64,000 bases of DNA, from sequence record MW812343.1. The stretch is one strand, 5' to 3'. Shown piece by piece: positions 1,024-22,592 of the stretch. A program made the position numbers and the translations under genes. How positions within the stretch are numbered: the stretch's first letter is position 1; each line of letters begins with the position of its first letter. Under the pieces are notes generated by a model, which searched no databases, was not told the origin of the DNA, and worked only from the letters and a program-made list of their open reading frames with translations.

Positions 1024-1027
1024 AACG

Positions 1028-1054
1028 GAAGGGCCGCTTGGCCCTTCTTTTTTT
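1028..1054 (+). terminator. Rho-independent terminator
   Basis: GAAGGGCC-GCTT-GGCCCTTC followed by T7, just after the 1023 stop. Confidence 0.85.
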
Positions 1055-1080
1055 GTTCGCGGTGGTCTTTAGGAGTCCTT

Positions 1081-2505: not shown

Positions 2506-2517
2506 GAGGTAATACAC

Positions 2518-3516: not shown

Positions 3517-3524
3517 GAGCGGCT

Positions 3525-5870: not shown

Positions 5871-5878
5871 GTGAAATC

Positions 5879-6931: not shown

Positions 6932-6937
6932 TAAAAG

Positions 6938-7822
6938 ATGGGTGTTAAAATCAGCTGGGACAGCCAAGCAGGGAAAGGATTGGATGCGATTGAGGTCTAC
7001 CGCAGTAAGGCCAAAATTGACCCGCAGAATCCGGGTAGCCCGTTGGCGTCACTTGACCCGAGCCTGACGTCGTATGAAGACTTCACGGCGGTCAACAAAA
7101 ACCTGTACTATTACTGCTTAGCCGCGAAGAAGGGAAACGAGCGTTCTTTTGGTACCAACCAACTGACGGGATACTTCTCGGAAACTGGGCCGGGTAACGC
7201 AACCGTGGTGCGTGGTAGCTGGAACTCCGGTTTCATGGATAAGGTGCCAAGTGCCTCGTTCATCACGGGTGCGGACTTAGCTGCCAAGTTGTCTGGCTTG
7301 GTCTACAGCGGTAATCCGGGTGTGCCAAATAACTGGTACAAGATGGCATGTAAAGGTAAAGTGCTGTTCTTCCCAGACGCGGCGATGTTCAACACAACGT
7401 GGAACCGTTTCTACGATGCCGGGATGGTGTTCGGTACAGACGACTTTGGTAAAACTCCATCGGGGACACCGGGTTCCGTCAACCAGAAGCGTGTTGTGGA
7501 AATCAACGGTTTGCAATATATTGCACGCCTAGCGAAACTCTCTGAAATCGGTCTGGATAAATACCTGACCGTGCAAGATGACACCATTGCCAGTGAGTAT
7601 CGCTCTACTCTCACGCGCATGGTACGGGCCACGATAGAGCCGCAAAACGGGGCACTGCGTCGTTTGGGCGACTTCACATCGGTACCAATCATGCTGGGAC
7701 AACACTTAGCAACCGCTACGCAGGCAGCATACGCGCCAGCGGGGGCACCTGCAACTTTGACTAACGTTGCAATCACCACCAACATCGCTACCGCCATCGT
7801 GTTAGAGTTGATCATGCCTTAA
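6938..7822 (+). CDS. Putative virion protein: FN3-like (type B) + domain X
   Basis: 294 aa; ISWDSQAGKGL..IEVYR; paralog of 3525..4460. Confidence 0.6.
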   Translation: MGVKISWDSQAGKGLDAIEVYRSKAKIDPQNPGSPLASLDPSLTSYEDFTAVNKNLYYYCLAAKKGNERSFGTNQLTGYFSETGPGNATVVRGSWNSGFMDKVPSASFITGADLAAKLSGLVYSGNPGVPNNWYKMACKGKVLFFPDAAMFNTTWNRFYDAGMVFGTDDFGKTPSGTPGSVNQKRVVEINGLQYIARLAKLSEIGLDKYLTVQDDTIASEYRSTLTRMVRATIEPQNGALRRLGDFTSVPIMLGQHLATATQAAYAPAGAPATLTNVAITTNIATAIVLELIMP

Positions 7823-7871
7823 AAAATAAAGACCCTACTCTCCCGTAAAGGAGAGTAGGACTTTTTTATTT
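7821..7871. terminator. Bidirectional intrinsic terminator (CCTAC/GTAGG family)
   Basis: A-tract, CCTACTCTCC-CGTAAA-GGAGAGTAGG, T-tract, between convergent genes. Confidence 0.85.
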
Positions 7872-8348
7872 CGTGACCAGCAACCCGGTACTGTTTAACG
7901 AGGGCTGACCTTCGGTGACGCACTGGAAGAATGTCATTCCTTCGCCGTTACCGGTGGCCGGGTCGACGTTTGAATAGGAGTATGTGGCATTCTTACCTTG
8001 GCTGCCGTGCAATCGGTAATAACGGGTACCGGTGAGCAACTCGATGCTGCCGTCGATTTTACCGAGCAGGTCTTTATACAGTTGCGGAGATTGAATACCA
8101 CCACCCGGATAACTGGCGTGCCATGTGGCACCATTATCCACCACGGTGGCTGAGAACGGCAACAGTTCCAGCTTACCAATCTGGGGCTGGTACTTCACGA
8201 AAGTTTCTTTCGCCGCGCTACATTGGTACACGGTGAAATCGGTTGCGGCGACTGGAATAGTGCCGAATTGACCGGTTGTGTTTGGTGCGAGCGCACAGCC
8301 AGACAGCAGCATTACGCAGGCAATGATCATCATTGCGAATTGACGCAT
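7866..8348 (-). CDS. Lipoprotein of unknown function (weakly MliC-like)
   Basis: 160 aa; MRQ + hydrophobic stretch + lipobox LSGC; AAGGA RBS; two further Cys. Confidence 0.7.
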   Translation of the reverse strand: MRQFAMMIIACVMLLSGCALAPNTTGQFGTIPVAATDFTVYQCSAAKETFVKYQPQIGKLELLPFSATVVDNGATWHASYPGGGIQSPQLYKDLLGKIDGSIELLTGTRYYRLHGSQGKNATYSYSNVDPATGNGEGMTFFQCVTEGQPSLNSTGLLVTK

Positions 8349-8476
8349 TTTTCCTTACCTCATTCATCATTTAGATTTATCGACGCAAACCGTCATATAA
8401 CAGGGCTCGGTCGTAAGAAAGTGTTTTTCTGTACTATTTTCTATGCACCACATGTTAACTCTAAAAGGAACACACG

Positions 8477-9007
8477 ATGGCTACCATCACTCCACAGGCG
8501 CAACTGGTTGCCCTGTTCAATGCAAAAAACTCAAGTCTGCCTCAGGCGCTGGCCGTGTCCGATGTTACATTCGGTGCGGTTGCCGAATACACACCCGGTG
8601 ACGGAAGCGATACTCGCAACTCTAAGCTGACCATCACGGCTGCCAGTGAGAGCGAACACTTCACCGGCTCGAAAGAGCTGCACTACACCCGTCTGTCTTC
8701 GGGTATCGTAGGTACAAAAGCCGTCACTGCCGATCAGGCTGACTGGGATACCGACGAAGAAGTATTGGCGAAACTGAACGCCGATGTTATCGCTGCCGGT
8801 AAAACCAGCGATGCGTTCGCGGCATCTGACCTGACCATCACCCGTTCTGATGGCGACAACGGCGCGAAAGTGATCGACATCCGCATCAACGCGGGCCACA
8901 TCAAATACCTGCCGGGTCAAGTTGCGACGTACACCATCACTGAAGAAATTCAGAAGACGGACATGAGTACCACCAACGGTGAGTTGGATGGTTTTACCAC
9001 CTCTTAA
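8477..9007 (+). CDS. Virion structural protein, minimal family-B anchor domain
   Basis: 176 aa; AAGGA RBS; ends KTDMSTTNGELDGF. Confidence 0.65.
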   Translation: MATITPQAQLVALFNAKNSSLPQALAVSDVTFGAVAEYTPGDGSDTRNSKLTITAASESEHFTGSKELHYTRLSSGIVGTKAVTADQADWDTDEEVLAKLNADVIAAGKTSDAFAASDLTITRSDGDNGAKVIDIRINAGHIKYLPGQVATYTITEEIQKTDMSTTNGELDGFTTS

Positions 9008-9021
9008 TAGGGTAGGTATTA

Positions 9022-9054
9022 AGGGGGGCGAAAGCCCCCCTGTTTCTTTTTTTT
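9022..9054 (+). terminator. Rho-independent terminator (GAAA tetraloop)
   Basis: AGGGGGGC-GAAA-GCCCCCCT followed by GTTTC and a T run. Confidence 0.85.
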
Positions 9055-9080
9055 AATGACCACAACAAAGGAGAACAAAT

Positions 9081-9611
9081 GTGGCAATTGTAACCGCGGA
9101 ACAACAACTATGCGACTTGTATAATGCTGCTAACCCAGGGTTACCACATCCTCTAACGCCAGATGATGTTACTTTCGGTTCTCGTGGGCCTTACACCCCT
9201 GAAAATACTGAAGGGTTGGAATTTATCCCCAATTACGCTTTGAGCCTGACAGCATCACCAGATAGCCCGTATTTCAAAGAAAGTATTACCGTACATTATC
9301 GCCGTGTACCGACCGGTTTCATGTATGGCAGTGAGGAGCATGTAGATGGCACCGTCGAGGAGTGGAATGATGATGAGCATGTACTCGCATTCCTGAACGA
9401 ACGCACCCAAATGCAGTACACCCGCGACGCGTTTCTTATTGATGATATCGTCATCACTCGCACTGATAACGACGATACGATGGACGTTAACGTCACCGTT
9501 AACAACCACATCAAGTTTATTGACGATGGTGTTACGTGGAAGATCGCAAAATCAGCAACGAAGACTGACCTCAGCACGGCCGACGGTGAGTTAGACGGTT
9601 TTAGCCAATAA
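9081..9611 (+). CDS. Virion structural protein, tandem paralog of 8477..9007
   Basis: 176 aa; GTG start after AGGAG; ends KTDLSTADGELDGF. Confidence 0.65.
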   Translation: MAIVTAEQQLCDLYNAANPGLPHPLTPDDVTFGSRGPYTPENTEGLEFIPNYALSLTASPDSPYFKESITVHYRRVPTGFMYGSEEHVDGTVEEWNDDEHVLAFLNERTQMQYTRDAFLIDDIVITRTDNDDTMDVNVTVNNHIKFIDDGVTWKIAKSATKTDLSTADGELDGFSQ

Positions 9612-9661
9612 AAGAAAAAAGCCTACTACCCTAATCGGTAGTAGGCTGCTTTTATTTTTTT
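9610..9661. terminator. Bidirectional intrinsic terminator (CCTAC/GTAGG family)
   Basis: A-tract, GCCTACTACC-CTAATC-GGTAGTAGGC, T-tract, between convergent genes. Confidence 0.85.
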
Positions 9662-9663
9662 GT

Positions 9664-10311
9664 TCACACTAAGCTGAGTGCGATAAACGGCCGTTTGATA
9701 TTCAGATACGTCACATTGACATTCTTTTTATCTAAAAGATTCAACCGTTCATGGTCAGGAATCGCCGGTTCTAACTGTTCTCGGAAGAACAGGTAGTTAC
9801 GATTGTAATTAAGCGTTTGGTCGACCGGCACTTTATACACTACCGAGGAATTGTCATCCGTATAGCTCGGCCACCCGAAACGGTGTACCGCTTCGTAGAA
9901 CGAATTACGAATGAACTCATCCACACCTGAGGCTTCCATAATGCGCAGGAACATCAGGTCAGCGAAGTCTTTATCAACTGCACGCGAGAGATTACCGGCC
10001 GGGGTATCAGGGTAGACGCCAATACTTGGCTTCTTCTGGTACATCAGGTCGTGTATACACGCCGCAGCGGCCCATGGGCCGTCGGGATGCAATAAGGGCT
10101 TCAATGCATCAGGGATACTCGCTAAGTCCGTTACAAATCCTCTGGGGGCCTCTACGAACATCTGTACGTCAGGATGGATTCCTGTCAGTGAAACCATCTT
10201 GTCCATACCGGGGTGGTTACGGTATAACGTGCGCAAACTGAACGCAAAACAAAAGTCGTCGGTTAAGACAAACCACGGCGCTTGCAATACTTTATAATTC
10301 AGTCGTTGCAT
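9664..10311 (-). CDS. DUF1353 family protein
   Basis: Motifs GFVTDLASIP, AAACIHDLMY, AD..FL..M and Y.AV..FG are characteristic of DUF1353. Confidence 0.8.
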   Translation of the reverse strand: MQRLNYKVLQAPWFVLTDDFCFAFSLRTLYRNHPGMDKMVSLTGIHPDVQMFVEAPRGFVTDLASIPDALKPLLHPDGPWAAAACIHDLMYQKKPSIGVYPDTPAGNLSRAVDKDFADLMFLRIMEASGVDEFIRNSFYEAVHRFGWPSYTDDNSSVVYKVPVDQTLNYNRNYLFFREQLEPAIPDHERLNLLDKKNVNVTYLNIKRPFIALSLV

Positions 10312-10320
10312 ACGCTTTCC

Positions 10321-10920
10321 TTACTTGCTGCACACGCCAACTTTAATGGCGTAGTCACCCATCTCACGGTAGACACGGTCGTACCAGCCGTAAGTGAACT
10401 CTTCGTTCTGCACGCGCTTCTCAGAAATCTCAGTGTAGTAGGCTACCTGATGGGAAGTCAGTGCGAACATCAGACGGTTGAAACCATCCAGACCGCGGGC
10501 TTTCAGGAAGCCTTCCAGTGCAGTCATGGTTGCAGGGCCAATACCACCGTCTGCGGAGATGTCCGCATACAGTTTACCCTGACGGTTCAACACGTTCAGA
10601 ATACGCTGGAGGGACTTGATACAGTTTGCACGACCGGCGTTGATACCGAAGTCGAACATACGGTCAGCCAAAAGCGGATTCCAAGCGAGAATCCGGTCAA
10701 GGCGCATACGATCCCACCACCCTTTCTTGTAGATGTCGAGCGCCATCTGACGGGTCAGATTACGCATGTCACCGGTGTATCCGTTCTCACGCGCCGTCGC
10801 TTGTGTAATGCCGAAGTTGGTTGGGCCGCCGAGGTCGTTAGGGTTATTCACATAACCCGCTTCGATGTTAACTTTGGCAGCAATGATACCTTCCATACTC
10901 CAACGATCTACAGTTGTCAT
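10321..10920 (-). CDS. Endolysin, glycoside hydrolase family 108 + PG_binding_3 domain
   Basis: EAGYVNNPNDLGGPTNFGIT matches the GH108 EGGY..D.GG.T..GIT motif; also FDFGINAG, DGGIGPAT and FTYGW..RV. Start moved to the ATG at 10920 after GAGGA. Confidence 0.9.
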   Translation of the reverse strand: MTTVDRWSMEGIIAAKVNIEAGYVNNPNDLGGPTNFGITQATARENGYTGDMRNLTRQMALDIYKKGWWDRMRLDRILAWNPLLADRMFDFGINAGRANCIKSLQRILNVLNRQGKLYADISADGGIGPATMTALEGFLKARGLDGFNRLMFALTSHQVAYYTEISEKRVQNEEFTYGWYDRVYREMGDYAIKVGVCSK

Positions 10921-10960
10921 AACGTTTCCTCTTATAAAGAACAACAGTCATAACAACCGT

Positions 10961-11004
10961 AAGAAAAAAAAAGAAAAGTGACCCACCCCCGAGGGAGTGG
11001 GCAC
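10961..11004 (-). terminator. Intrinsic terminator closing the RiPP-like operon
   Basis: Minus strand reads GTGCCCACTCC-CTCG-GGGGTGGGTCAC followed by TTTTCTTTTTTTTT. Confidence 0.8.
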
Positions 11005-11007
11005 ACC

Positions 11008-11664
11008 TTAGGCTACACCATTTTCTTCAGCAAGCTGCTTAATCGCGGTGAAGTCTTTTTGTTCCGTCAGAATACGGATGCGCTGCTTCAACACCGACAT
11101 GACCATATGGAGTTCGTTGTCACGAGTGATGATGGTAGCATACAGCTCTTTCACATCCTCAACTGACCACGGCTCAATCTGTTCATTATTCAGTGTTGTC
11201 CAGTACAGGGGATCAACCTCTGACTGGATATAGCTTTGCATGGTATCGCGGGCTTTCTGATCCGCCTGGAACGTTTTATCGCGGAACGTAATGGGAGCAA
11301 ATCGCTCCGCATTATACTTGTCGTTCAGCTTCGGATAAATCGCATTCACTTCCTGATAGAGGTAGTTATCCGTCGAGGTCAACGCTGAGCGGACTTGATC
11401 TAAATCAATCCCTAACACATCGTTGATGAACTCTTTGGTTTTCTTCATCAGGAACGTAATTTCGACCGGCGACAGGTCAAAGCTTTTGAGTTTCTCAATG
11501 GCTTTCTTGTCACTCATCCCGTTAATCAGTTGGTAATGCAGTAACAGGCAGAAGCCGATACGGTTTTCCAACTGGTCTTGGTATTCTTCTACGAAGTTAC
11601 CGTAGCGGTCGATGCGTGTACCCCGTTCGAAATAGCGGGCTTTTATTTCGTCGTTACTAAGCAT
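11008..11664 (-). CDS. DUF4376-like protein (tail-fibre-associated chaperone-like C-terminal domain)
   Basis: C-terminal half ITFRDKTFQADQKARD...YWTTLNNEQ...VEDVKELY resembles DUF4376 (F..D..S/R...W...DN...L...L). Overlaps the upstream gene by 22 nt. Confidence 0.6.
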   Translation of the reverse strand: MLSNDEIKARYFERGTRIDRYGNFVEEYQDQLENRIGFCLLLHYQLINGMSDKKAIEKLKSFDLSPVEITFLMKKTKEFINDVLGIDLDQVRSALTSTDNYLYQEVNAIYPKLNDKYNAERFAPITFRDKTFQADQKARDTMQSYIQSEVDPLYWTTLNNEQIEPWSVEDVKELYATIITRDNELHMVMSVLKQRIRILTEQKDFTAIKQLAEENGVA

Positions 11665-12200
11665 CCGGATTCTCCTACAATCCCAAGGTCATCCAGCAGA
11701 CCGAAGTCAATGAACTGGAAATCGTTTTCCAACTCTTCACCCCAGAGCAGTTTGGCCTCTTCTGCTTCGTCGCCCATCTCTTCCAGCGTCTTACGCACGA
11801 CTTCGTATTCGTGGTAGAACGCATCGGTCAAGTGCGTACCGCGCAAGGCACGGATGGTCACACCGGGGAAGTTCAGGGCCAGACCTAACACGTTGGTTGC
11901 ATCGGATTCACCGGTAGAGCGGCGCAATACCTGCAACTTGTGTTTAGGGAACTTCGCCACACGTTCTTCGAAACCGGGATTACGCTTCTCGATTTCAACC
12001 ACAGACTGGTGCGAGTCTTCCACGCCCTGAAGAGGTATGATGACATTCAGGCCATAACGGTTCAACAGACGAATAACGTCATCGTTGAAATCTTCACCCG
12101 GCACGATCGCATGGACGTTGAACAGCTTGTGTTTACGAATGAACGCATCCACAAGGTGCACATTACGCCGAGTAAAATTGTGAATCAGCAATGACTTCAT
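11643..12200 (-). CDS. Hypothetical protein, probable degenerate radical-SAM barrel fragment without CxxxCxxC
   Basis: 185 aa; AIVPGEDFNDDVIRLLNRYGLNVIIPLQGVEDSH parallels the rSAM segment STNGTLF...LSIGVSIDGLPEVH of the adjacent enzyme. Overlaps both neighbours. Confidence 0.45.
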   Translation of the reverse strand: MKSLLIHNFTRRNVHLVDAFIRKHKLFNVHAIVPGEDFNDDVIRLLNRYGLNVIIPLQGVEDSHQSVVEIEKRNPGFEERVAKFPKHKLQVLRRSTGESDATNVLGLALNFPGVTIRALRGTHLTDAFYHEYEVVRKTLEEMGDEAEEAKLLWGEELENDFQFIDFGLLDDLGIVGESGCLVTTK

Positions 12201-13509
12201 TCGAGGCTCCGAGTTCTAATTTAAGTTTATCCTGCTGCATACGTTCGCGTACGCAGCTCGCACAGTAGCACATAGACTTATCGTGCAGGTCTGCGACATT
12301 CGTGGTACCGGTCTTCTGATACCAGTATTCAGCCACAAGCAGTTTTGCGGTTGTCCAGCCACACTGGCGACGCTCAGCGTGGTACTCTTTACGCGCTTCC
12401 AGCTCACCATCACCGTTCTCGTAAGAAGCAGCCGCACAGCTACCACACGAGTGTTTCATCGGGCAGCCTAAGCAGGTAGACGGGTAGTTGGTGTACTGCG
12501 TCTGGATTTCGTTTAACAGCTTGTTGCCGTCGATATTCACAATCTCACGTCCACGCAGTTCAGCCACCGCTGAACGGGTCGTTACGGTTGACATGAAGCG
12601 GTTACAGCCGTAGATTTTACGGTCGAAGCCGAGGCAGGTCATGTGTGTTAACGTACCGCAGTAAGGACGTACGCGGTCTGGGTGCAGGCGGGTTTGTTCG
12701 TCATCCAGCAACTTCTGACGCCAGTCCGGGTCCCACGTTGCCATGAAGTCCAGCCCATCAGGAATGATGTGGGTCAGGATATTACGCGGTGATTTGTGGT
12801 AGCCGTTATCTACCCAATAGTCGATAACGTCCATCATCTGGTTAGCGATACCCAGAGACATATCACGCGTTAGGATATCTTCGTACGTGACGTTACCGGA
12901 GATGGTACCGCCGCCCGTTTCTTTAATCAGGTGAATCATGCTCTCGCCGTAGCGCGGCAGGGTTTCACCGGTAAAGGTGGCTTTGATACCGAGTTCAGCA
13001 ATACCCACGGATTTGAGGTATTGGTAACCACGCATCGCTTGGTCGTAAGAACCTTCACGCGACGTGGTGAAGATACGATAGCGGTCATGCACTTCTGGCA
13101 GACCATCGATAGACACACCGATGGACAGGCGGTCTTTCCAGCGTTCGATGATTTCTTTACTGATAGGGCGATCGAACAGCGTCCCGTTGGTCGAGATAGA
13201 GAAGACGTACTGGCGGTTGTCGCGCGCCGCTAACTCTTCAGCAGTCTCAAAGACGGCTTTCAGAATCTTCGGCTGCATAAACGGCTCACCCCCGATGATG
13301 TCGATAATGATTTCGGCATCTTCGATGTGGCGATCGCGGTCAAAACACGCATGAATAAAATCGACAGCATCATCCACTTTGTTGTTACGTGGATATTTGC
13401 GCTCGTAGCAATACGAGCAGTCGAGATTACACGACAGGTTAGTCACAACCTGATACGTGAGTGTCGCGCGCTGTTTACGCGTCTGCGATGTAGACTTTTC
13501 TTCGCTCAT
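12163..13509 (-). CDS. Radical SAM/SPASM peptide maturase (CXXX-repeat target family-like)
   Basis: CNLDCSYC (CxxxCxxC), IIGGEP, STNG, SIDG..HD..R and GSYD. SPASM cysteines: C-x7-C...GC, CLGCPMKHSCGSC and RRQC. Extra C-terminal CYCASC. Confidence 0.92.
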   Translation of the reverse strand: MSEEKSTSQTRKQRATLTYQVVTNLSCNLDCSYCYERKYPRNNKVDDAVDFIHACFDRDRHIEDAEIIIDIIGGEPFMQPKILKAVFETAEELAARDNRQYVFSISTNGTLFDRPISKEIIERWKDRLSIGVSIDGLPEVHDRYRIFTTSREGSYDQAMRGYQYLKSVGIAELGIKATFTGETLPRYGESMIHLIKETGGGTISGNVTYEDILTRDMSLGIANQMMDVIDYWVDNGYHKSPRNILTHIIPDGLDFMATWDPDWRQKLLDDEQTRLHPDRVRPYCGTLTHMTCLGFDRKIYGCNRFMSTVTTRSAVAELRGREIVNIDGNKLLNEIQTQYTNYPSTCLGCPMKHSCGSCAAASYENGDGELEARKEYHAERRQCGWTTAKLLVAEYWYQKTGTTNVADLHDKSMCYCASCVRERMQQDKLKLELGASNEVIADSQFYSA

Positions 13510-14399
13510 TTGATTACCTCGTTGCGATGTTTACGAGCATGGATCGTGCGGTTGATGTAACGGTAGGCGTCTTGCCCAATGACTTTAGCCAGCATGTTAC
13601 AACCGCTATCGATTTCCATATCCACATCAAGCGTATAGCCGACGGAGGCATCTGAATCCAGACGAACCAAAGCACTGCACGCATTACACGACTGCTCAAA
13701 GAACTTACTGATAGAAAAACCGGTATGGCCATTGTTCATGACGTTCAGACGCTCAATCTGGTCTTCCATCTTGTTGTAGCCATACATGAAATTCATCACC
13801 AAATCTTGGTTCAGAGGTTTCTTCATGCGGTTGTCCAACAGCAGGGTCATGTCTTTGAACCCGTAGTGGTACAGCGCACGGTGCAAGTCCAGCAGGTCAA
13901 GATGCCAATACTTCTCGGCCAGTTGCTCACGAGTCACCACGGCCCACGTATGGACGTTGTTCAATGCAGCCATCACCTCAAAGGCTTCGAATGCATCATC
14001 TTCAACGACACGCCAGAGCGGACGTTCGCTCTTTTTGTATCCATCGAACGATACGCAGATACGGTTGAACTGTTGCAGCATCGGAAGGTGCTCCAAGCGC
14101 ATTTTCAGACCGTTCGTGTACAGTTCGTGAGTGAGATGTGGATAACGGGCTTTGACTTCTGCCAGCAACGGCTCAATCTTACGGGTTGCCATTAACGGCT
14201 CACCGCCCGTCCAGTTCATCCCTTGTAAAGTCGGGTATTTCTCCAGTTGTTCAAACAGCGCTTCACGCTGAATTTCCCGACCAACATCTTTTGTGTCCAT
14301 GTAATACGCTCCGCCGCAGAAACTACAATCCAAATTACACTTGGACGTCGTCACTATCGACAGCTCGGTAGGGGGACGTATTTGTGGTGCATCGGTCAT
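13506..14399 (-). CDS. Radical SAM protein with short C-terminal Cys motif (Twitch-like)
   Basis: CNLDCSFC, WTGGEP, YTNG and VSFDG; C-terminal CNAC...GC. ATGA overlap with the downstream rSAM gene. Confidence 0.88.
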   Translation of the reverse strand: MTDAPQIRPPTELSIVTTSKCNLDCSFCGGAYYMDTKDVGREIQREALFEQLEKYPTLQGMNWTGGEPLMATRKIEPLLAEVKARYPHLTHELYTNGLKMRLEHLPMLQQFNRICVSFDGYKKSERPLWRVVEDDAFEAFEVMAALNNVHTWAVVTREQLAEKYWHLDLLDLHRALYHYGFKDMTLLLDNRMKKPLNQDLVMNFMYGYNKMEDQIERLNVMNNGHTGFSISKFFEQSCNACSALVRLDSDASVGYTLDVDMEIDSGCNMLAKVIGQDAYRYINRTIHARKHRNEVIK

Positions 14400-14417: not shown

Positions 14418-15296
14418 TTAATAGATCGCGAACAGCGGATCGTCTTCAAACTTCGAACCCACATCCAGAATGAAATCGGAGTGGTAGGCTTCGAGAATCT
14501 GATTCAGAATCGCATGGCGCTCGTTAATCCGGTTAAGGTCATCGAGGGTCACAATTCGCGACTTGATGTTTGAAACCGCCTTTTCTTCGTCAGCCGTTAA
14601 GGAGACCTTCGTCAGAAGGAAACTTACCAGCTTGCTCAGGTCAGCTTCGGTACCCGGCATTTCACCAAAGCGCCACTGCACCAGAAACTGCATCCACGGT
14701 TTGCGGATACGGCGACTGATTTCATGCGGGTCAGTGATCGCTTCAAATTGTTCATCTGCTGCATTCCAACGGAACTTGTAGCTGTACGCCAGCAAGTCTG
14801 CCAGACAGTGGATGCCGAGGGTTTCATATCCTAAGATGTGGTGGTATTTTTCCACCCCTTGGTATTCTTTCGTACCCGTAGGAACCAGGGTATACCAGAA
14901 CACGTTAGAGGAAGGATAGTCCCAACTCCATTCGCGGCGAACCATGGGAATAACGTCCAAATCCGCAAAAGGCGTGAAGATCAGTTCCAAATCCATCGAA
15001 TGGTTGAGGACGGAGTCGGTGAAGAAATACTTACCGTCAATCAACCGGCCGCTGCAACTCAGCTCGCTTTGTTCGAACTTCACATGCTGAACGCTATGCT
15101 TGCCGATGGTGTAGGTGTTCTCTTCGGTGTACTGCTTACGCACAATATCCCGCCCACGCACCTTAGGCCATTCGCCCGGCAGCATCGAAATAAGGCGGAC
15201 ATCATCCGCGACATGCGCACGCACACTGTCGAGTGATGAAATCTGTAACGGAAAGTTTTGCGTCGTGCGGTACGCCAAATGGAGGTCGTTCTTCAT
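14418..15296 (-). CDS. Hypothetical protein within the RiPP-like operon
   Basis: 292 aa; AAGGA RBS; lies between the precursors and the rSAM genes; no motif recognised. Confidence 0.8.
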   Translation of the reverse strand: MKNDLHLAYRTTQNFPLQISSLDSVRAHVADDVRLISMLPGEWPKVRGRDIVRKQYTEENTYTIGKHSVQHVKFEQSELSCSGRLIDGKYFFTDSVLNHSMDLELIFTPFADLDVIPMVRREWSWDYPSSNVFWYTLVPTGTKEYQGVEKYHHILGYETLGIHCLADLLAYSYKFRWNAADEQFEAITDPHEISRRIRKPWMQFLVQWRFGEMPGTEADLSKLVSFLLTKVSLTADEEKAVSNIKSRIVTLDDLNRINERHAILNQILEAYHSDFILDVGSKFEDDPLFAIY

Positions 15297-15313: not shown

Positions 15314-15523
15314 CTATCGGTTACCCGCCCCGTAGCTACATCCCCCGCTGCATGTCCAGCTACAGCTCCCGCCGCAGTTGTAATGAGAGAGTGGAAGACC
15401 AGCGAGGTTATTGGTCGAACTGACCGTACCGCGGGTAGCGATGTAATTGTTAGCCTGTGCGGTCGAGATATAACCTTCGACGTTTTGCACTCGATCGCGA
15501 ATGTTTTTCAATGAGATAGCCAT
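15314..15523 (-). CDS. Cys-rich RiPP-like precursor C (short core, 4 Cys)
   Basis: 69 aa; leader MAISLKNIRDRVQNVE; core CGGSCSWTCSGGCSYGAGNR; GAGGA RBS. Confidence 0.8.
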   Translation of the reverse strand: MAISLKNIRDRVQNVEGYISTAQANNYIATRGTVSSTNNLAGLPLSHYNCGGSCSWTCSGGCSYGAGNR

Positions 15524-15544
15524 AGGTCCTCACTCGATAGATTT

Positions 15545-15937
15545 CTATCGACTGCCTGAACAGCCAGAGCATCCCGTACAACTAGAACTACAGGAACCAG
15601 AGCAGTTACCTGAACACGTACCCGAACAACCCGAGCACCCGCCAGAACACGACCCAGAGCATCCTGAGCACCCGCTGGTACACCCAGAGGTACAGCTCGA
15701 CGAACAGGAAGAACCACAGCCCCCTGAGGCCGAACCGGAACAGCCACCTGAACAGCTAGAGCAACCCCAGCTACAAGTTCCGCCGCAATCGTAGTGAACA
15801 CGTCCTTGGCCGCCGAATAAGTCGACGTTATTGGTTGCTTTACCGCGAATGTATGTTTGTACGCCGCCTTCGGTTTTTAATGCGTTGGCTTCGACAACCG
15901 CAATACGGTCAGCAAGGTTTCGCAAATTGATAGCCAT
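15545..15937 (-). CDS. Cys-rich RiPP-like precursor B (CxxxC repeats, 20 Cys)
   Basis: 130 aa; leader MAINLRNLADRIAVVE; core begins CGGTCSWGC; AGGGG RBS. Confidence 0.85.
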   Translation of the reverse strand: MAINLRNLADRIAVVEANALKTEGGVQTYIRGKATNNVDLFGGQGRVHYDCGGTCSWGCSSCSGGCSGSASGGCGSSCSSSCTSGCTSGCSGCSGSCSGGCSGCSGTCSGNCSGSCSSSCTGCSGCSGSR

Positions 15938-15946
15938 AATTGCCCC

Positions 15947-16336
15947 TTAATTCGGCCCAGAGCACGCAGAGCATCCGGTACAGCTGGAAGAACACGATCC
16001 AGAACAACCGGATGTGCATTTCCCGCTACAGGATGAAGAACATGAGCCGGAGCAGCCAGAACAACCGGAACACCCGCCACCGCAGTTAGAAGAACAGCTA
16101 CCCACGCACGTAGAAGTACAGGTTCCTGAGCAGCTAGTACAGCTTGCAGAACACCCGTTCGAGCACGACCAGCTACAACTGCCACCACAGTCTAGTCGGG
16201 AGGGAGACCACCCACTAAACGAGTCCGCAGCGTTGTATGCTTTCGATGCTACCTGACCGTCTACACGAGGCCCGGTTGCATAGTTTGCTTCTACATTGTT
16301 AACGCGGTCGCGTATGTTTTTCATTGAAATTGCCAT
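15947..16336 (-). CDS. Cys-rich RiPP-like precursor A (CxxxC repeats, 21 Cys)
   Basis: 129 aa; leader MAISMKNIRDRVNNVE; core begins CGGSCSWSC; AAGGA RBS. Confidence 0.85.
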   Translation of the reverse strand: MAISMKNIRDRVNNVEANYATGPRVDGQVASKAYNAADSFSGWSPSRLDCGGSCSWSCSNGCSASCTSCSGTCTSTCVGSCSSNCGGGCSGCSGCSGSCSSSCSGKCTSGCSGSCSSSCTGCSACSGPN

Positions 16337-16350
16337 ACGTTTCCTTTGTC

Positions 16351-16391
16351 AATAAAAAAATGAGGACGCTGCCATAATGACAGCCCCTCAT
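16351..16391 (-). terminator. Intrinsic terminator/attenuator between the fibre gene and the precursor genes
   Basis: Minus strand reads ATGAGGG-GCTGTCA-TTA-TGGCAGC-GT-CCTCAT followed by TTTTTTATT. Confidence 0.65.
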
Positions 16392-16401
16392 GTAATAAGT
16401 G

Positions 16402-17601
16402 TTATCTTGTACCCGCTTCAGCTTGTACGTCGTCGCGAGAAGTCAGGCTGCTGTTGACGTGTACTGCCGCCTGAACCACACCACCGTACTGCTTGTGGAG
16501 GTAGTTCGGGTGCGGGTTGTCCGCGTTAATGTGGTTTTGCAGGTTCTGAGACAGCGTGTTGATGGAGTTCTGCAACCCAGCCACTTGCTGTTTCAGTGCG
16601 TTGACCTCACCGGAGAGATCCTGAATCTGCTGCTGCGTATCCGACCCGGCTGCTTCCAAATCACTGATGCGCTGTTTCAACCCATTGATGACTTGGTTCT
16701 GGTCATTCACTAACTTTTGAAGTTGAAGTACCAGAGAGTTAAGGTCAGCTTGTTGCAGGGCAGCTTTCTGGTAATTCAGCGCCACCGAGTTCAGCTGGTC
16801 ATTCCACGAACCAAGCGCGCTGACCACTGCATCAATACGTGCACCCAGTGCCGTGTCTGCGGCTTTCAGGTTACCGATATCCGCGAGCACCGCATTAATA
16901 GCCGTCTGCACGCTTTGAATCAGCGCACGGATTTCCGTTTCAGTCAGGCCGTTCGCTTGGTGAATATCCAGCGAGTGGACGTTCCCCTTCGAATCAATGT
17001 GCGATTGCAGCGCGGTCATCAACTGGGTCTGCATGTCAGACATGGCAGTCAGAATCTGTTGCAGCTGAACTTCGTTACCGGAGTTAATCGCATCGGTCAT
17101 CAGCGCTAACTGCGTGATGATGTACTCGAAACCAAACAGGTCACCAAGGTCTTTAAAACCCGGTGCTGATGCAAAGGTATCAGGCACGTTACGCAGGTCA
17201 GCAAAGTCCACCTTACGGTCTTCAAGGTTCGCATCGGCTAACGCTTGTTTAATCGCGGTGATGACCGCTGACTGAGGCCCGCCGACCACTTGAGCCGTAC
17301 AGACAATATCGGTTGGAATCGCACTGTTGGTGACAACGACCGCCATACAGACTTCGCGGTTCTTTGTGAGTTTCATGTACGCCGGATGGACGTAAATCAG
17401 CTCGTAGTCGGTGCCGCGGGTATAAATGGTGTTCGGTTGGTTGGCCGGACGCATACGGAACGTGTCTGCGTAGAACGGCCCTGCTGGAAAGGCGAACGCG
17501 CGGTTAACCTTTCCCCCACCTAACACAACTGGGACATTGACCGCGTTACTGGACGCGGAACCCGTCAGGTCAAGTGGGTATTGAAATAGAATATCTGGCA
17601 T
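16402..17601 (-). CDS. Short tail-fibre-like virion protein with long coiled coil
   Basis: N-terminal YPLDLTG...GPFY...GTDY domain is shared with the three large fibres. Heptad-rich middle contains RISDLE; HINADNPHPNYL fibre motif near the C-terminus. ATG at 17601 follows GGGAG. Confidence 0.7.
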   Translation of the reverse strand: MPDILFQYPLDLTGSASSNAVNVPVVLGGGKVNRAFAFPAGPFYADTFRMRPANQPNTIYTRGTDYELIYVHPAYMKLTKNREVCMAVVVTNSAIPTDIVCTAQVVGGPQSAVITAIKQALADANLEDRKVDFADLRNVPDTFASAPGFKDLGDLFGFEYIITQLALMTDAINSGNEVQLQQILTAMSDMQTQLMTALQSHIDSKGNVHSLDIHQANGLTETEIRALIQSVQTAINAVLADIGNLKAADTALGARIDAVVSALGSWNDQLNSVALNYQKAALQQADLNSLVLQLQKLVNDQNQVINGLKQRISDLEAAGSDTQQQIQDLSGEVNALKQQVAGLQNSINTLSQNLQNHINADNPHPNYLHKQYGGVVQAAVHVNSSLTSRDDVQAEAGTR

Positions 17602-17648
17602 GGCCAAACTCCCTTAGCGAGACGTCCTTGTCTCATCGTGTTAGATGG

Positions 17649-20600
17649 TTACAGCAACTTAGGCATAAGATTGACCGACAGCTTGGAAGCCGCAGAGGTT
17701 CCACCGTAGTAGTTTGCCCCTTTCCCGACATAGAGAGCGTTATCTTCAATCAAGTACATGATAGGCTCAACGGTCGCGTATTCAGCCATGATAACCGGGA
17801 AGTAATCACTCAGCGAAATACCCGCTGGCATATCGACCCGATAAACTTCGCGTACACCTTGCGTCAGTCTGCCGTTGCTAGGCCCGGATACGTTCGTGGT
17901 TGCCCGAATCAGAACGGTATCGGCATCGGACAGGTAGAACGGGGTCTCTGTGCCGTCGGTATCAATGTTAGAGAGGCTAAACGCCGCAAACATAGAAGCC
18001 TTACTGGCCGAGTTTCCACTGATTGTGAATACGTTCTTCACACCCACCTGCGCGGTCAGAACAGCAGAGTTGTTACCGGAGAGAATACTCGCAGCGTTTC
18101 CTGTGGTTTCATTCCGAACCGAGATAGAACCAGATGAAAAACTGTACCCGGCACCCACTTTGACACGTACCGTCGGTGTCGAAGGTGTAACTTCCACAAT
18201 CATCGTCCAAATCAACGACGTAATCGCAGACATCCCTTCAATACCAACCCACTTCGCTCCATCAATCGCAGACTGTGCTGCACCATTCACCCCTTTTACC
18301 GTAAAGTGTTTGAAGTCTTTAGGTAGCGTTGTGATGTCTACATCGCGAAGCAGCTCAATCGGTGCGCCGTGGTTTTGTGCGGAGAAAATCGAACCTACCT
18401 GATTGACGTCCAAGTACGTCCCGCCGGTTGCGGAAGGTGCAGCAATGGGTTGTTTACGCAACAGCCCCAAACGGGAAAGCCTCGCTTCGGTATCGACATT
18501 CACATCGTGACTGTAGATCGTTTCTGCGTGCTCTGTCAGTTGTTTCAACTCACCTAAACGCTTCACCTTGGTGAACTCCGATGACAGGATACGTTTGTCA
18601 TCTGTCACCACCGTGCCCAGATACAGGCGACTGTTGGTGTCGGGTAACTTCGTTGTCAACAGCTGGTATTCTGCCACACCGTTAGTGACCACTGCGTGCA
18701 TGTAGAACGTACGGTTCTGGTATGCCCCAGGGAACAGTGTCCGAATGTCTGCACTGTATTCCGGTAACGTGTAATACGAGGAACCGAAACGCAACGCTTC
18801 TTCTTCGGTGACGTACAGCTGCCACCCTTCTGCCGTTTTCACCCCTGCGAGAATCGCATCTTCTGACGTTGTGGACTGGAACGTTCTGCTGAGATTCGGA
18901 TACAGGGCTGCCCCGTAGTACATACCGGAATAGAACCACTTCGTGATACCGAGGTAACCCGTTTCAGGATGAATGAACAGATCCTGTTCGCCCACTTGCG
19001 GGTTGACGCGGAAGAAGGTGTTCGTCCAGTCTGACCATGAGGTGTCGCAGGTCAGTAAGAAGCTGGCCCAACGTGAGTCACCCACCACGCCATGGCGGTA
19101 CACACCACCCAACAGCAGCACGTAGCCGTCGTTACGGTACACCAATTTGGAGTTGATGTATTGGTCGCGAGTTAAACTGATAGCGGCATTGTTGTCGTAG
19201 TACGCATCCACAACCAACGCACGGGAACCCAGCGTCAGAGAGATGTTTCCTACTGCATCCACCGCCATCGGGACACGCCACACCCACGTACGGTTATACG
19301 CACGGACTTTGCTGTCGTTTTCCCACGTACGCGTAGTCAGGTACATCATCGCAAGGTTAGTCCCCCCGATATCAAACACCTGCAACGCGATCTGCTTGTC
19401 GACGGTCAGTGGATTATCGTAATACGCCACCTCTCCCTGCACAGCAGCATTCATGCTATCGAACAACGCCTGACTGGCTGTAATACGGTCAGCCGTCAAC
19501 ACCGTTGTTCCCGCCACGTTTTTATACGCGTAGGTACCCGGACTGTTAATGGTGCGACCATTAAGGGTAAGGGCGTTATTCTTCCAGACGTTCGGTATCA
19601 TCGCAATTTCTTGCGCGACAGCAGCGTCGACCGAGACACGGTCATTGTCCGGGCCGTATCCATACGCAGAGTAACCGTCGAAATACTGGCTACCCGTGAC
19701 ATACTTCGCCACTGCGTATTTCGTTGTGGCCAGATAACGGAAAAGAATCTTCTGCTCACTACCCCCAAGGTGGATACCCATGCGCATGTACTGCTGGTAA
19801 ACAGAACCTTCCGCGCCTTTACCGGTCATGCTGCTGATGATACCAATCCGTGGGGAGCCCGCTAACAGGTCGTAATACTCTTTCCCGCCCAGCGAACCAA
19901 TGTCGTAATACGGCGGATTGTTGCTGTACACGTCACAGATAATCCCGACCAGATATCCCGCAGTCGCGAAATAGTTGGTAAGCAACGCTACGCCAAAGTT
20001 ACGGTTTGATACCGACGTTGGCGGTTGACCATTCGGGAACTCCAACTTGTTCTCGGTAATCGCCAATGGGAAGATGTTGGTTTCCAGCGTGACCTTGCCG
20101 GTATCCACATCGATGTTGTACACGGTTGCCCACGCGTCAGACCATGTGGCATTATAGGCGTTGCTGTAGTAACCGTGCGACTCACTGCGCAACCGAACGT
20201 TCTCACCGCGTGCAGCACTCAGGAAGGACGGGCGATAGTTCGCCACGTTTCTTGACCCTGTCCACTTCTCACGACCGGCTGCTGTGGTGTAAGCAATCCG
20301 CTTCGTGGCTGTGTTGTCGTCCTCAGGGCCGCCGTCTTCTACAAAATGAATCGCATCCCCATCTTTACTCGGATAGGTCAGCGACATCACGGCGAAGTTG
20401 GCTACCGTTTGGCCGGTCAGTGCCGTACGTGCTACCTTCCATGCCGCGACGTAGAACGTCGAGTTGGTCAGGTAGTTGTACGCAATCATGATCGCTTTCG
20501 CAGTCAGAGTGATGGTACAGTACGTTATGTTTTTCACCGGATTAAGGCTGCCGGTAGAACGCGCCGCATCGGGAAGGTTTACCTGATACACCTGCGTGTG

Positions 20601-22592
20601 CTTGGCTTGGTTCATGGAACCGCCATACACAACCAGATACGTTTTACTGTCCGACCCGGTAAACAGAGCCAAACCATCGCCAGCTAACAGCACCTTCGTT
20701 AGCGTCACGCCAGGGAAGTTAACCATCCCCGCGGGGTGATACTTCTGTGTGGTCGGAACAGCCCCGAGCAGCTTCCCATCGTTACCCACCTTCGAATACC
20801 AATAATAGATACCGTCGGTTTCGGTCGGACCATCCGTCCCGTTTCGCAGGATGTAAAGCTTATCACCTTCAATCCCAGCAGAACCTAAAGCAGACGAACG
20901 GAAGAAACCGAAGCCTGCGTAGTTACTGACCGTTGGGATATTCAGGAATCCGCTGTTCCCGTAGGATGCACCACCTGTTGTCCACGACGGTAGCAGGGTA
21001 TCCAGTACGCCTTTATACGTGTTAAGACGCTGCTGAACGTTGTAGCCCTGTTTAGACGTCACAACCTTATCGGTGGTGGTGTCAATGGCATCCCAGAGTT
21101 GCAGCAAACCTGCGGTAGTATCAGACGCCGTTGGTACGGCGGTCAGATCCGCAAAGGTGTGCGTGTGGTTCGCCAATGCTTTATTCGCCAATACCGCACG
21201 AATGGCTGTTGTCAACGGTTTTTCAGACGGGGCTGTGTTGTTGAGGTTACCTACACCCACGTCGGATGCAGACAGGGACAACGTCTGGGTTGACCCGTCA
21301 TCCACAAACTTCTTACCGTTGATGGTGTACGTGTTGTCCACGTAGTTATCCAGCGTTTTCTTCAACACGTTAACTGCGTATTGGGAAATCGCTGTACCGG
21401 AAGTCAGGTTCGCCGACAGGTTAGTGATGGCAAACAGACCCGGCACCGTATCCGTTGCGGTAGGCAGTTGGGCGTTCATGGTCAGCGGCGATGACTCACG
21501 CGCCGTACCGAACGTTTTGATTGAATCGGTCGAGGCGAAGTACGCATTCCCCGGCAGGAGTTTCACTTCCGCCAGATACAGCGATACCATGTCGGGCGTT
21601 ACCAGATACGCACCGTTGAAAATCGGCGCAACAGCGCCGTTCAGGACGTACGCGGTATTCAGACCGGAGCCCAGTTCAACCCCCACGCCTTTTTCGTTAT
21701 TATCTGCATCCGCGGTGACATTAATGGCACGCGTGGTCGTGATGAGGAACTTCTCACCTTGCAGAGTAATGACATGACTGGAGTCTGCCGTACGGAACGT
21801 CAATGCGCCGTTGTTCAGCACTTTCAAACGGCCACGCAGTTCTCCGAGCACCACAGGCATCAGGGTATCGATGTGTGCTTGCTGAATCCCATTGGTCTTC
21901 ATGATAGCCACTAACTCATCCAGCGTCTTTCCGAACGCTTTGGTTGAGTCAACGGCTTTGGTCAGCACTTTCAATGCACCGATTTCGTCAGTGGTGTACT
22001 GGTGGGCATTCTTGATACGATGATGGCTATACAGGTTGTCATCAAAGATTTTCTTGCCGTTAGCAAAAATCAAATCGGTGACTTCACTGTACGCGGCATC
22101 CATTTCTCCGGCGCGCTTAATCAATCCCAGACGGATATCATCCAGCGCTTTTACCACCTCATCGCGAAGCAGGGCTTCGTCGAGGTTAGCCGGGGGGTCG
22201 ATGGCAGGAATCACTGGCGCATAGCGCATCAGTTCCGACCAGTCAACGTTACGCGGATCGGCAATGTCCTCCTTTACGAGGAACTTACCAATCTCGGTCT
22301 GTGGAACGCGGTATTCGCGCCCAATCGAACTGATGGTGTAATCAACGGAGGTGTCCCCGTTAATCAACATAATCCCGCCGTAGATTTGGTCTTTCATTGC
22401 GACAGCGGCTTCTTTGTAATAGTAGCCGAGGTAGTAATCCAGACCCTCAATGAGCTTTGTGCCTGCGCTGTTTTTCAGCTCAAGCCCGGTACGGAAGAAC
22501 GGCCCCTCAGGAGGGATGACCACATTGTATTTGTTTGGATACGTGGTCGTCAGTAGCGTACCGGTAAATTTGGCTACGTTCGTGCTCGCCAT
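17649..22592 (-). CDS. Large tail fibre / baseplate fibre protein (1647 aa)
   Basis: Shared N-terminal GPFF...G.DY domain; fibre shaft motifs (DVGVGNLNNT, HTHTFADL, AS.T.AG..QL); large beta-rich insert. Confidence 0.75.
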   Translation of the reverse strand: MASTNVAKFTGTLLTTTYPNKYNVVIPPEGPFFRTGLELKNSAGTKLIEGLDYYLGYYYKEAAVAMKDQIYGGIMLINGDTSVDYTISSIGREYRVPQTEIGKFLVKEDIADPRNVDWSELMRYAPVIPAIDPPANLDEALLRDEVVKALDDIRLGLIKRAGEMDAAYSEVTDLIFANGKKIFDDNLYSHHRIKNAHQYTTDEIGALKVLTKAVDSTKAFGKTLDELVAIMKTNGIQQAHIDTLMPVVLGELRGRLKVLNNGALTFRTADSSHVITLQGEKFLITTTRAINVTADADNNEKGVGVELGSGLNTAYVLNGAVAPIFNGAYLVTPDMVSLYLAEVKLLPGNAYFASTDSIKTFGTARESSPLTMNAQLPTATDTVPGLFAITNLSANLTSGTAISQYAVNVLKKTLDNYVDNTYTINGKKFVDDGSTQTLSLSASDVGVGNLNNTAPSEKPLTTAIRAVLANKALANHTHTFADLTAVPTASDTTAGLLQLWDAIDTTTDKVVTSKQGYNVQQRLNTYKGVLDTLLPSWTTGGASYGNSGFLNIPTVSNYAGFGFFRSSALGSAGIEGDKLYILRNGTDGPTETDGIYYWYSKVGNDGKLLGAVPTTQKYHPAGMVNFPGVTLTKVLLAGDGLALFTGSDSKTYLVVYGGSMNQAKHTQVYQVNLPDAARSTGSLNPVKNITYCTITLTAKAIMIAYNYLTNSTFYVAAWKVARTALTGQTVANFAVMSLTYPSKDGDAIHFVEDGGPEDDNTATKRIAYTTAAGREKWTGSRNVANYRPSFLSAARGENVRLRSESHGYYSNAYNATWSDAWATVYNIDVDTGKVTLETNIFPLAITENKLEFPNGQPPTSVSNRNFGVALLTNYFATAGYLVGIICDVYSNNPPYYDIGSLGGKEYYDLLAGSPRIGIISSMTGKGAEGSVYQQYMRMGIHLGGSEQKILFRYLATTKYAVAKYVTGSQYFDGYSAYGYGPDNDRVSVDAAVAQEIAMIPNVWKNNALTLNGRTINSPGTYAYKNVAGTTVLTADRITASQALFDSMNAAVQGEVAYYDNPLTVDKQIALQVFDIGGTNLAMMYLTTRTWENDSKVRAYNRTWVWRVPMAVDAVGNISLTLGSRALVVDAYYDNNAAISLTRDQYINSKLVYRNDGYVLLLGGVYRHGVVGDSRWASFLLTCDTSWSDWTNTFFRVNPQVGEQDLFIHPETGYLGITKWFYSGMYYGAALYPNLSRTFQSTTSEDAILAGVKTAEGWQLYVTEEEALRFGSSYYTLPEYSADIRTLFPGAYQNRTFYMHAVVTNGVAEYQLLTTKLPDTNSRLYLGTVVTDDKRILSSEFTKVKRLGELKQLTEHAETIYSHDVNVDTEARLSRLGLLRKQPIAAPSATGGTYLDVNQVGSIFSAQNHGAPIELLRDVDITTLPKDFKHFTVKGVNGAAQSAIDGAKWVGIEGMSAITSLIWTMIVEVTPSTPTVRVKVGAGYSFSSGSISVRNETTGNAASILSGNNSAVLTAQVGVKNVFTISGNSASKASMFAAFSLSNIDTDGTETPFYLSDADTVLIRATTNVSGPSNGRLTQGVREVYRVDMPAGISLSDYFPVIMAEYATVEPIMYLIEDNALYVGKGANYYGGTSAASKLSVNLMPKLL

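Follow-up and report, generated by a model that had tools for sequence, protein, structure and literature searches.

What do three small cysteine-rich proteins do among the tail-fibre genes of a jumbo phage, beside two radical S-adenosylmethionine (radical-SAM) enzymes? The question is raised by a window of 64,000 nucleotides from the genome of the Erwinia jumbo phage pEa_SNUABM_6, a 240-kb Machinavirus (sequence record MW812343.1), in which positions 15314–16336 encode three paralogous peptides, named A, B and C. An initial annotation of the window had interpreted their N-terminal regions as structural trimerisation and docking modules that are not removed from the product. The explanation favoured here, with a rough probability of 45%, is that A, B and C are retained, fibre-associated, cross-linked products. 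They would be small structural-type proteins rather than classical leader-plus-core precursors of RiPPs (ribosomally synthesised and post-translationally modified peptides). Listed below are the features concerned.

15947–16336, minus strand: gene of peptide A, 129 residues, with the helix, an A-specific linker and a (C-S-G-x)n core with 21 Cys (open reading frame; phrog_6085, E 2e-48)
16277–16336, minus strand: residues 1–20 of A, the N-terminal module with its heptad pattern; RVNNVE at 16289–16306 (profile of the L010 proteins described below; alignment A4)
15545–15937, minus strand: gene of peptide B, 130 residues, with the helix, a B-specific linker and a core with 20 Cys (open reading frame, PHROG search)
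15878–15937, minus strand: residues 1–20 of B, N-terminal module, with RIAVVE at 15890–15907 (L010 profile)
15314–15523, minus strand: gene of peptide C, 69 residues, with the helix, a C-specific linker and a 20-residue core with 4 Cys (open reading frame, PHROG search)
15464–15523, minus strand: residues 1–20 of C, N-terminal module, with RVQNVE at 15476–15493 (L010 profile)
16402–17607, minus strand: 401-residue virion protein (phrog_2163, virion structural protein, and coiled-coil family matches)
16353–16391, minus strand: terminator-like hairpin in the gap between the 401-residue protein gene and the peptide A gene (folding energy)
14418–15296, minus strand: 292-residue protein, function unassigned (phrog_8030), always directly downstream of peptide C
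13506–14399, minus strand: radical-SAM enzyme of 297 residues, with CX3CX2C and without a SPASM domain (PF04055, 2.8e-11; phrog_1802)
12163–13509, minus strand: radical-SAM/SPASM-type enzyme of 448 residues, without an N-terminal RiPP recognition element (RRE) (NCBIfam and structure matches)

The A, B and C genes are real and are under purifying selection. A Shine–Dalgarno-like site lies before each of them. In comparison with the relative Parshik, the differences at codon positions 1, 2 and 3 number 7, 3 and 43 in A, 3, 0 and 36 in B, and 3, 1 and 25 in C, and the third-position excess is seen in leader and core alike.

Profile comparisons in both directions connect the N-terminal helix of the three peptides to proteins of the fibre-tip type. 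A profile of the three window leaders has 28 matches among 1.84 billion proteins, mostly further family members, and leads to protein P0079 (E 9.7e-4) through the N-terminal 27 residues only. P0079 is encoded in L010, a 250-kb contig with 32% G+C, within an array of 17 small proteins, nearly all of which share one N-terminal sequence, and the hexamer Arg-h-x-x-h-Glu (RhxxhE, where h is hydrophobic) occupies residues 11–16 in 14 of the 17. Several of the array proteins carry Gp53-like_C or Collar domains, Peptidase_S74 fibre genes adjoin the array, and a second such array is present in contig L066. Conversely, when a profile of nothing but the L010 N-termini is run against 1196 six-frame segments of the window, C (E 9.9e-6), A (2.7e-4) and B (0.089) come out at the top, the fourth match having an E of 6.3. 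All three matches begin at Met1, and the alignment (A4) is ungapped, so that the window peptides and the L010 and L066 proteins have in common an N-terminal module aligned from the first residue. In the 17 kb of L010 examined there is no radical-SAM gene and no similarity to the window proteins beyond this module. Since the same module heads fibre-tip-like proteins with no radical-SAM gene found nearby, the helix appears to be of fibre type and not RiPP-specific. Judged by these matches, the A/B/C helix is one case of a module that stands at the start of small trimeric fibre-tip-like proteins and occurs independently of radical-SAM chemistry, and RhxxhE is a real feature of that wider module.

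From profile position 24 on, an alignment (A3) of the bodies of three proteins of the L010 array with their relatives matches the head of AP22 gp53 (4MTM; E 0.0065) and the R1-pyocin fibre head (6CXB; E 0.0066). The gp53C protein is a trimer in which a coiled-coil handle immediately precedes the head (10.1101/518761). The module of the L010 and L066 proteins thus stands at the position of the gp53 handle and, as in the window, starts at Met1 and lies in a tail-fibre neighbourhood. This positional equivalence, together with the literature on the motif (PMC5940361, PMC3653964), suggests that the helix of A, B and C may form a three-stranded coiled coil. The window peptides differ from AP22 gp53, the R-type pyocin tips (6CXB, 6CL5) and the L010 and L066 proteins in what follows the helix: a linker and Cys repeats replace the lectin-like, trimeric receptor-binding-type head. 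They differ from small fibre-tip proteins also in the presence of radical-SAM enzymes at the locus. The view that the leader is a structural module is therefore borne out in part, as the profile matches make it a fibre-type N-terminal module, while the hexamer itself is not kept across clades; a structural module rather than a disposable leader has real comparative support, partial as it is. The shared N-terminal module would define a family of exchangeable small fibre-tip proteins.

A classical RiPP system offers a different account of the same helix. In such a system the helix would be the part of a 49-residue N-terminal leader that the maturases or the 292-residue protein recognise; once the cross-links are in place, a host or unrecognised protease would cut this leader off, and Cys-rich bioactive peptides would be freed at lysis, which would remove the need for an exporter. 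One N-terminal helix serving three substrates is known from multi-precursor systems, and the layout of leader and Cys core beside two radical-SAM enzymes fits as well. The presence of the same module on fibre-tip-like proteins away from any radical-SAM gene found nearby speaks against this account, and a strict-motif DNA scan of 185,579 bacterial and archaeal genomes (GTDB), with the first six residues as in peptide C, finds no family member. On balance the classical account is rather unlikely.

The enzymes bear on both sides of this alternative. PF04055 is found in both, the 448-residue enzyme has a SPASM-like Cys pattern, and a Cys-rich core thus stands beside a radical-SAM/SPASM maturase. 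The best families of the 448-residue enzyme in NCBIfam are thioether maturases: TIGR04115, the CXXX-repeat maturase (2.9e-37; 129 bits against a cut-off of 350), then PapB (1.1e-36; 126.8 bits against a cut-off of 340), and then other thioether or cyclophane RiPP maturases including SCIFF and CcpM, all far below their cut-offs. Only peptide A has a weak match to the TIGR04114 repeat (14.7 bits against a cut-off of 20), so that no cut-off of a curated RiPP family is reached by either maturase or precursor, a point against a classical RiPP. The closest solved structure to the 448-residue enzyme is 5WGG (5e-13; query residues 24–197 aligned to residues 104–276), which we take to be CteB and whose first ~100 residues we take to be its RRE domain. 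These family and structure matches, like the weak repeat match of A, count in favour of a classical RiPP. Since the alignment starts at residue 104 of 5WGG, the 448-residue enzyme lacks the CteB-like first ~100 residues. Pfam finds no PqqD/RRE domain in any cluster protein, and Pfam, NCBIfam and PHROGs find no peptidase and no transporter or exporter in the cluster, which again disfavours a classical RiPP. The absence of a protease, with which the initial annotation found its reading consistent, thus holds in these searches, and the fold of the 292-residue protein has no significant structural match either, be it to a protease or to any other protein. This protein matches nothing in Pfam or NCBIfam. 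Its AlphaFold model (predicted local distance difference test score, pLDDT, 89.4; predicted template modelling score, pTM, 0.83) consists of a curved sheet and a helical bundle; no PDB or BFVD entry except its own orthologue matches at E < 0.1, and the best weak matches are NTF2-like curved sheets with E of at least 0.13. PADLOC reports generic radical-SAM similarity only, through its viperin model, and was set aside.

The position of the cluster is a second line of evidence for fibre-associated products. The order on the minus strand is the 1647-residue fibre protein, the 401-residue coiled-coil protein, A, B, C, the 292-residue protein, the 297-residue radical-SAM enzyme, the 448-residue radical-SAM enzyme, the 185-residue protein and the DUF4376 protein. 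This order is identical in Parshik, pEa_SNUABM_8, SPN3US, CR5, Wellington, EarlPhillipIV, Asesino, pEa_SNUABM_11 and Phobos; these nine relatives from several genera and the window make up the ten phages compared below, with 30 peptide orthologues in all. By synteny in the ten phages, virion fibre genes and fibre-associated genes flank the peptide cluster, and A, B and C are thus encoded among tail-fibre genes, as small fibre-tip proteins are. Its place within this conserved block of tail-fibre genes does not vary, an arrangement that tells against a classical RiPP. The remaining genes of this tail-fibre module are the following.

17649–22592, minus strand: 1647-residue baseplate/fibre protein, homologue of SPN3US gp168 (synteny)
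11643–12200, minus strand: 185-residue conserved protein (phrog_7988), function unassigned, syntenic in all relatives
11008–11664, minus strand: 218-residue DUF4376 protein (PF14301, 1.9e-8; weak phrog_1807, tail fiber, 3e-4)

The protein next to peptide A is a virion protein. The 401-residue protein has an N-terminal domain, a long coiled coil (approximately residues 180–365) and a short conserved C-terminus, and its SPN3US homologue, gp167 (44.8 kDa), has been detected in virions. The neighbouring gp168 is described as a tail protein of the baseplate or fibre (PMC5105663). The SPN3US virion lists include gp160 and gp167–171 and do not list gp161–166; gp161 is the DUF4376 homologue. For the peptides themselves the SPN3US proteomes are uninformative, because A' and C' are unannotated and gp166 is in the wrong frame. 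The SPN3US papers make no mention of gp161–gp166, and the pSal-SNUABM-04 paper contains no proteomics.

On either strand, the DNA of the Cys repeats has more than one open frame, which has led to misannotation. In the window, overlapping open frames are found at 15501–15794 and 16014–16256 on the plus strand and at 15508–15801 and 15877–16188 on the minus strand. In SPN3US (L003, 7001–8030), where the three peptide reading frames lie at 7001–7393, 7404–7808 and 7824–8030, gp166 (ACQ60_gp100) is a wrong-frame open reading frame over B', and Parshik gp178 is an opposite-strand open reading frame over peptide A (L001, 9904–10239).

The virion lists lead to a further alternative, in which the Cys-repeat proteins act inside the cell, for example as metal-binding or Fe–S-handling partners or as transient scaffolds or chaperones of fibre assembly, and are absent from the finished particle. 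A composition of ~26% Cys with Ser and Gly resembles that of metal-binding proteins, and for CrpA, a Cys-rich protein modified by a radical-SAM enzyme, a role connected with metals has been suggested (PMC13692751). The absence of gp161–gp165 from the virion list means that part of the block is non-structural; the absence of the peptides from the proteomes is uninformative for the reason given above. Such a helper role leaves the fibre-type module, the invariant Cys count and the C-terminal domains of C-type relatives unexplained, and it is improbable.

The Cys count and the domains just mentioned belong to the region behind the helix. A conserved C-x-G-x-C-S-W nucleus is followed by (C-S-G-x)n repeats, and the cores are ~80 (A), ~80 (B) and ~20 (C) residues long. 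Peptide A has exactly 21 Cys at almost fixed spacing in all ten phages (window 15950–16189; orthologues L001–L009); its first five Cys spacings are invariant (4, 4, 4, 4, 3), although DNA of this repetitive kind would be expected to gain and lose units readily. The repeat unit of the cores is C-S-G-[SGTN], and the core of peptide C is always 20 residues long. The fixed Cys count of A and core length of C suggest a constraint on length or number. Two C-type proteins of uncultured relatives, P0053 (L012, 8001–8633) and P0063 (L026, 8001–8444), which reside in the same conserved cluster, possess a further C-terminal domain in the same frame, 85 to 148 residues long and strand-rich in appearance, that finds no match in Pfam, the PDB or, by tblastn, 50,697 phage records. 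Large domains past the Cys motif are at odds with a classical RiPP core.

Helix and linker have been conserved in opposite ways. Within one phage the helices of the paralogues are up to 82% identical, and orthologues of different genera are 45–49% identical; over the next ~30 residues the relation is reversed, with 9–35% identity between paralogues and 54–61% between orthologues. The linkers are therefore paralogue-specific and conserved between genera, which speaks against a classical RiPP. Gene conversion was considered as the cause of the helix similarity and rejected: identical helix residues have the same codon in only 6 of 14 cases, so that the similarity is kept at the protein level and does not come from recent gene conversion.

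These features lead to a model of the products. Each peptide would consist of a helix of ~17–20 residues with hydrophobic heptad positions 5, 8, 12 and 15 and, in the window lineage, the Arg/Glu pair; of a ~30-residue linker specific to each paralogue; and of the C-x-G-x-C-S-W nucleus with (C-S-G-x)n. The two adjacent radical-SAM enzymes would cross-link the Cys repeats, most likely by thioethers, the linkage that relatives of the larger enzyme install. The product would keep its N-terminal part, which would oligomerise, probably as a three-stranded coiled coil, dock the product on the tail-fibre apparatus, or do both, and A, B and C would be located in the virion. Among candidate partners the 401-residue coiled-coil virion protein stands out, and the oligomers could be either A3, B3 and C3 or mixed. 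It is doubtful, though conceivable, that RiPP-type radical-SAM chemistry builds a virion part in this way, namely from cross-linked Cys-repeat polypeptides that bear a fibre-type coiled-coil adaptor and sit on the tail-fibre apparatus of SPN3US-like jumbo phages; products mounted like this would possibly be rigid or protease-proof tips or rods.

The hexamer that first drew attention to the helix reads as had been claimed. RhxxhE stands at residues 11–16 as RVNNVE in A, RIAVVE in B and RVQNVE in C, with h at heptad positions a and d as in the trimerisation motif; the first core Cys is residue 50, 51 and 50, respectively; and RISDLE lies in the coiled coil of the 401-residue protein at residues 313–318 (16654–16671). 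The heptad register, put at residues 5, 8, 12, 15 and 19, is hydrophobic at its first four positions in A, B and C, and residue 19 is Tyr, Ala and Ile, respectively. RhxxhE was established as a trimerisation motif by Kammerer et al. 2005 (via PMC5940361 and PMC3653964), and it is effective only in the right context, within a trigger sequence (PMC3653964). Among 74 open reading frames of the window (20,244 residues) there are 9 cases of the strict form R[ILMV]xx[ILMV]E, against 3.6 ± 1.9 in shuffles. The hexamer is not rare and is by itself weak evidence of low information, and its three copies in the paralogues count as one ancestral event.

Several observations weigh against the favoured reading. 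Arg and Glu are not conserved among relatives as a functional salt bridge would be: 14 of the 30 orthologues retain the strict motif, the Arg/Glu pair being lost in about half, and 7 of 21 metagenomic representatives have it. Position 11 is Arg in 22 of the 30 and position 16 is Glu in 22. All three peptides have the strict motif only in the window and Parshik, and none of the nine peptides of the Derbicusvirus clade (CR5, EarlPhillipIV, Phobos) has it, position 11 being Gln or position 16 being Ser or Gln. The statement that all three leaders carry the motif is thus true of the window lineage and fails in whole clades. The pattern shared by all 30 is hydrophobic, at positions 3, 5, 8, 12 and 15, with one Ala at 15. 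The helix is only ~2.5 heptads long, very short in comparison with other RhxxhE proteins, from which it differs also in the loss of the Arg/Glu pair in many orthologues. The hydrophobic moment of A and B is not above that of shuffled sequences, in a test that is not discriminating, and a PDB search with the module profile returns coiled coils at non-significant E of 0.14–1.5. The equivalence of the module to the gp53 handle is one of position rather than of sequence. A helix common to three substrates is also expected of a maturase-recognition element. A terminator-like hairpin lies between the 401-residue fibre gene and peptide A, directly after the stop codon of the former and ~15 nucleotides upstream of the start of the latter (14-bp stem and U7; -18.7 kcal/mol with a z-score of -3.4; none of 200 shuffles reaches this stability). 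The single-sequence model of P0053, the only one made of a family member, has a pLDDT of 32 and is unusable. The hairpin had been missed by the built-in terminator scan.

The initial annotation went further than the favoured reading in proposing a parallel coiled coil that is a heterotrimer of single A, B and C chains, docked on the C-terminus of the 401-residue protein and displaying the cross-linked tips. Each of the ten phages has a single copy of A, of B and of C, in fixed order, and this strict conservation of the set, like the likeness of the three helices within one phage, would suit a heterotrimer. The cores of 80, 80 and 20 residues make a poor fit to a symmetric rod, and proteins with this module are expected to be homotrimeric through their heads. 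The equal register of the first Cys holds in the window (50/51/50) and becomes 47/51/50 in the Derbicus and Wellington clades; this variation between clades is a further difficulty for the heterotrimer. In the Derbicus clade (L004, L006, L009), A keeps Arg-11 and loses Glu-16, and B and C keep Glu-16 and lose Arg-11. These complementary losses would leave an Arg–Glu bridge only in a mixed trimer, which favours the proposal, but they represent very few independent events. Matching phage records number 73 for the peptides, 67 for the larger enzyme and 64 for the 401-residue protein (coverage at least 80%), from the same host genera; the 401-residue protein and the peptides thus occur in about equally many records, a point for the proposal, but the co-distribution of peptides, 401-residue protein and enzyme is confounded by shared ancestry. 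The hairpin, too, separates the fibre gene from A. The heterotrimer in this exact form is quite improbable.

As to the 401-residue protein itself, its N-terminal ~260 residues match parts of proteins, some annotated 'YomR', in many other jumbo phages of Serratia, Ralstonia, Pseudomonas, Klebsiella and other hosts, and in Vibrio phage pVa-21 part of the protein, residues 8–334, is matched. Only in the peptide-bearing clade does it occur at full length, with the conserved C-terminus.

Among known systems, the CXXX-repeat (TIGR04114/TIGR04115), PapB/freyrasin and CteB/SCIFF systems are like the window in having a Cys-repeat C-terminal region beside a SPASM-like radical-SAM enzyme. The window differs from them in scores far below the cut-offs and in that no RRE, protease or exporter is found; it adds a second radical-SAM enzyme without SPASM and a 292-residue partner of novel fold, its 'leader' is a fibre-type module, and its genes lie in a phage tail-fibre operon. 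The gamma subunit of quinohaemoprotein amine dehydrogenase (QHNDH), modified by QhpD, is a case of radical-SAM thioether cross-links in a polypeptide that stays in a protein complex. It has no sequence relation to the window peptides, loses its leader and is a subunit of an enzyme, not of a virion. The QHNDH/QhpD system has been named as a parallel to CrpA/CrpB/CrpC of Methanococcus voltae (PMC13692751). The latter is the nearest published parallel to the window, with CrpA and CrpC as the counterparts: a radical-SAM/SPASM enzyme puts thioethers on a Cys-rich protein, not a short peptide, and the paralogous substrates have a common N-terminal region and no known cleavage or export step (PMC13692751). 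There are differences in that CrpC has an RRE and belongs to TIGR04463, for which the 448-residue enzyme of the window reaches 61 bits, the cut-off being 525; in that the Crp repeats are 17 or 34 residues long with C-x-x-Q/D, whereas the window repeats are C-S-G-x; and in that the Crp context is cellular and the window context viral.

Literature searches aimed at the use of radical-SAM peptide cross-linking in phage structure returned no description of it. Should the products be parts of the virion, theirs would be the first case found, and it would extend to viruses the emerging class of RiPP-like protein modifications represented by CrpA and QHNDH. Some 70 sequenced jumbo phages with hosts in Salmonella, Erwinia, Escherichia, Cronobacter and Proteus have the conserved cluster, among them SPN3US, a genetic model phage with published virion proteomics.

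Further searches with the module were of limited yield. Local alignment of the leaders against the other window proteins gives a best E of 0.16, and a resemblance of the linkers to a motif common in phage fibres found no support. Word-indexed protein searches return one protein for the A leader and seven for the L010 N-terminus, and tblastn of an L010 small protein against the 50,697 phage records returns nothing useful. Scans for the DNA pattern of the module find only family members and chance matches in IMG/VR, and family members and two more L010-type proteins in metagenomes; the GTDB scan yields chance matches only, among them an L057 protein that resembles the ATP-synthase gamma subunit. 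The large matches of the leader profile, P0060, P0068, P0075 and P0076, were dismissed as repeat or coiled-coil artefacts. Leader residues 19–48 weakly resemble, possibly by chance, an 80-residue repeat in P0075, a type-IX-secreted surface protein (8–11 bits per repeat over seven repeats) that also matches a PHROG annotated 'virion structural protein'.

The L010 and L066 arrays (5131–13594 and 236–3585, respectively) are made of tandem small genes, up to 17 of them, with one common N-terminus. To judge from this organisation they look like a cassette system of alternative fibre tips. Many of the array proteins also end in '...AIGY', which is sometimes followed by a conserved hydrophobic tail, and P0079 consists of two array units in one reading frame.

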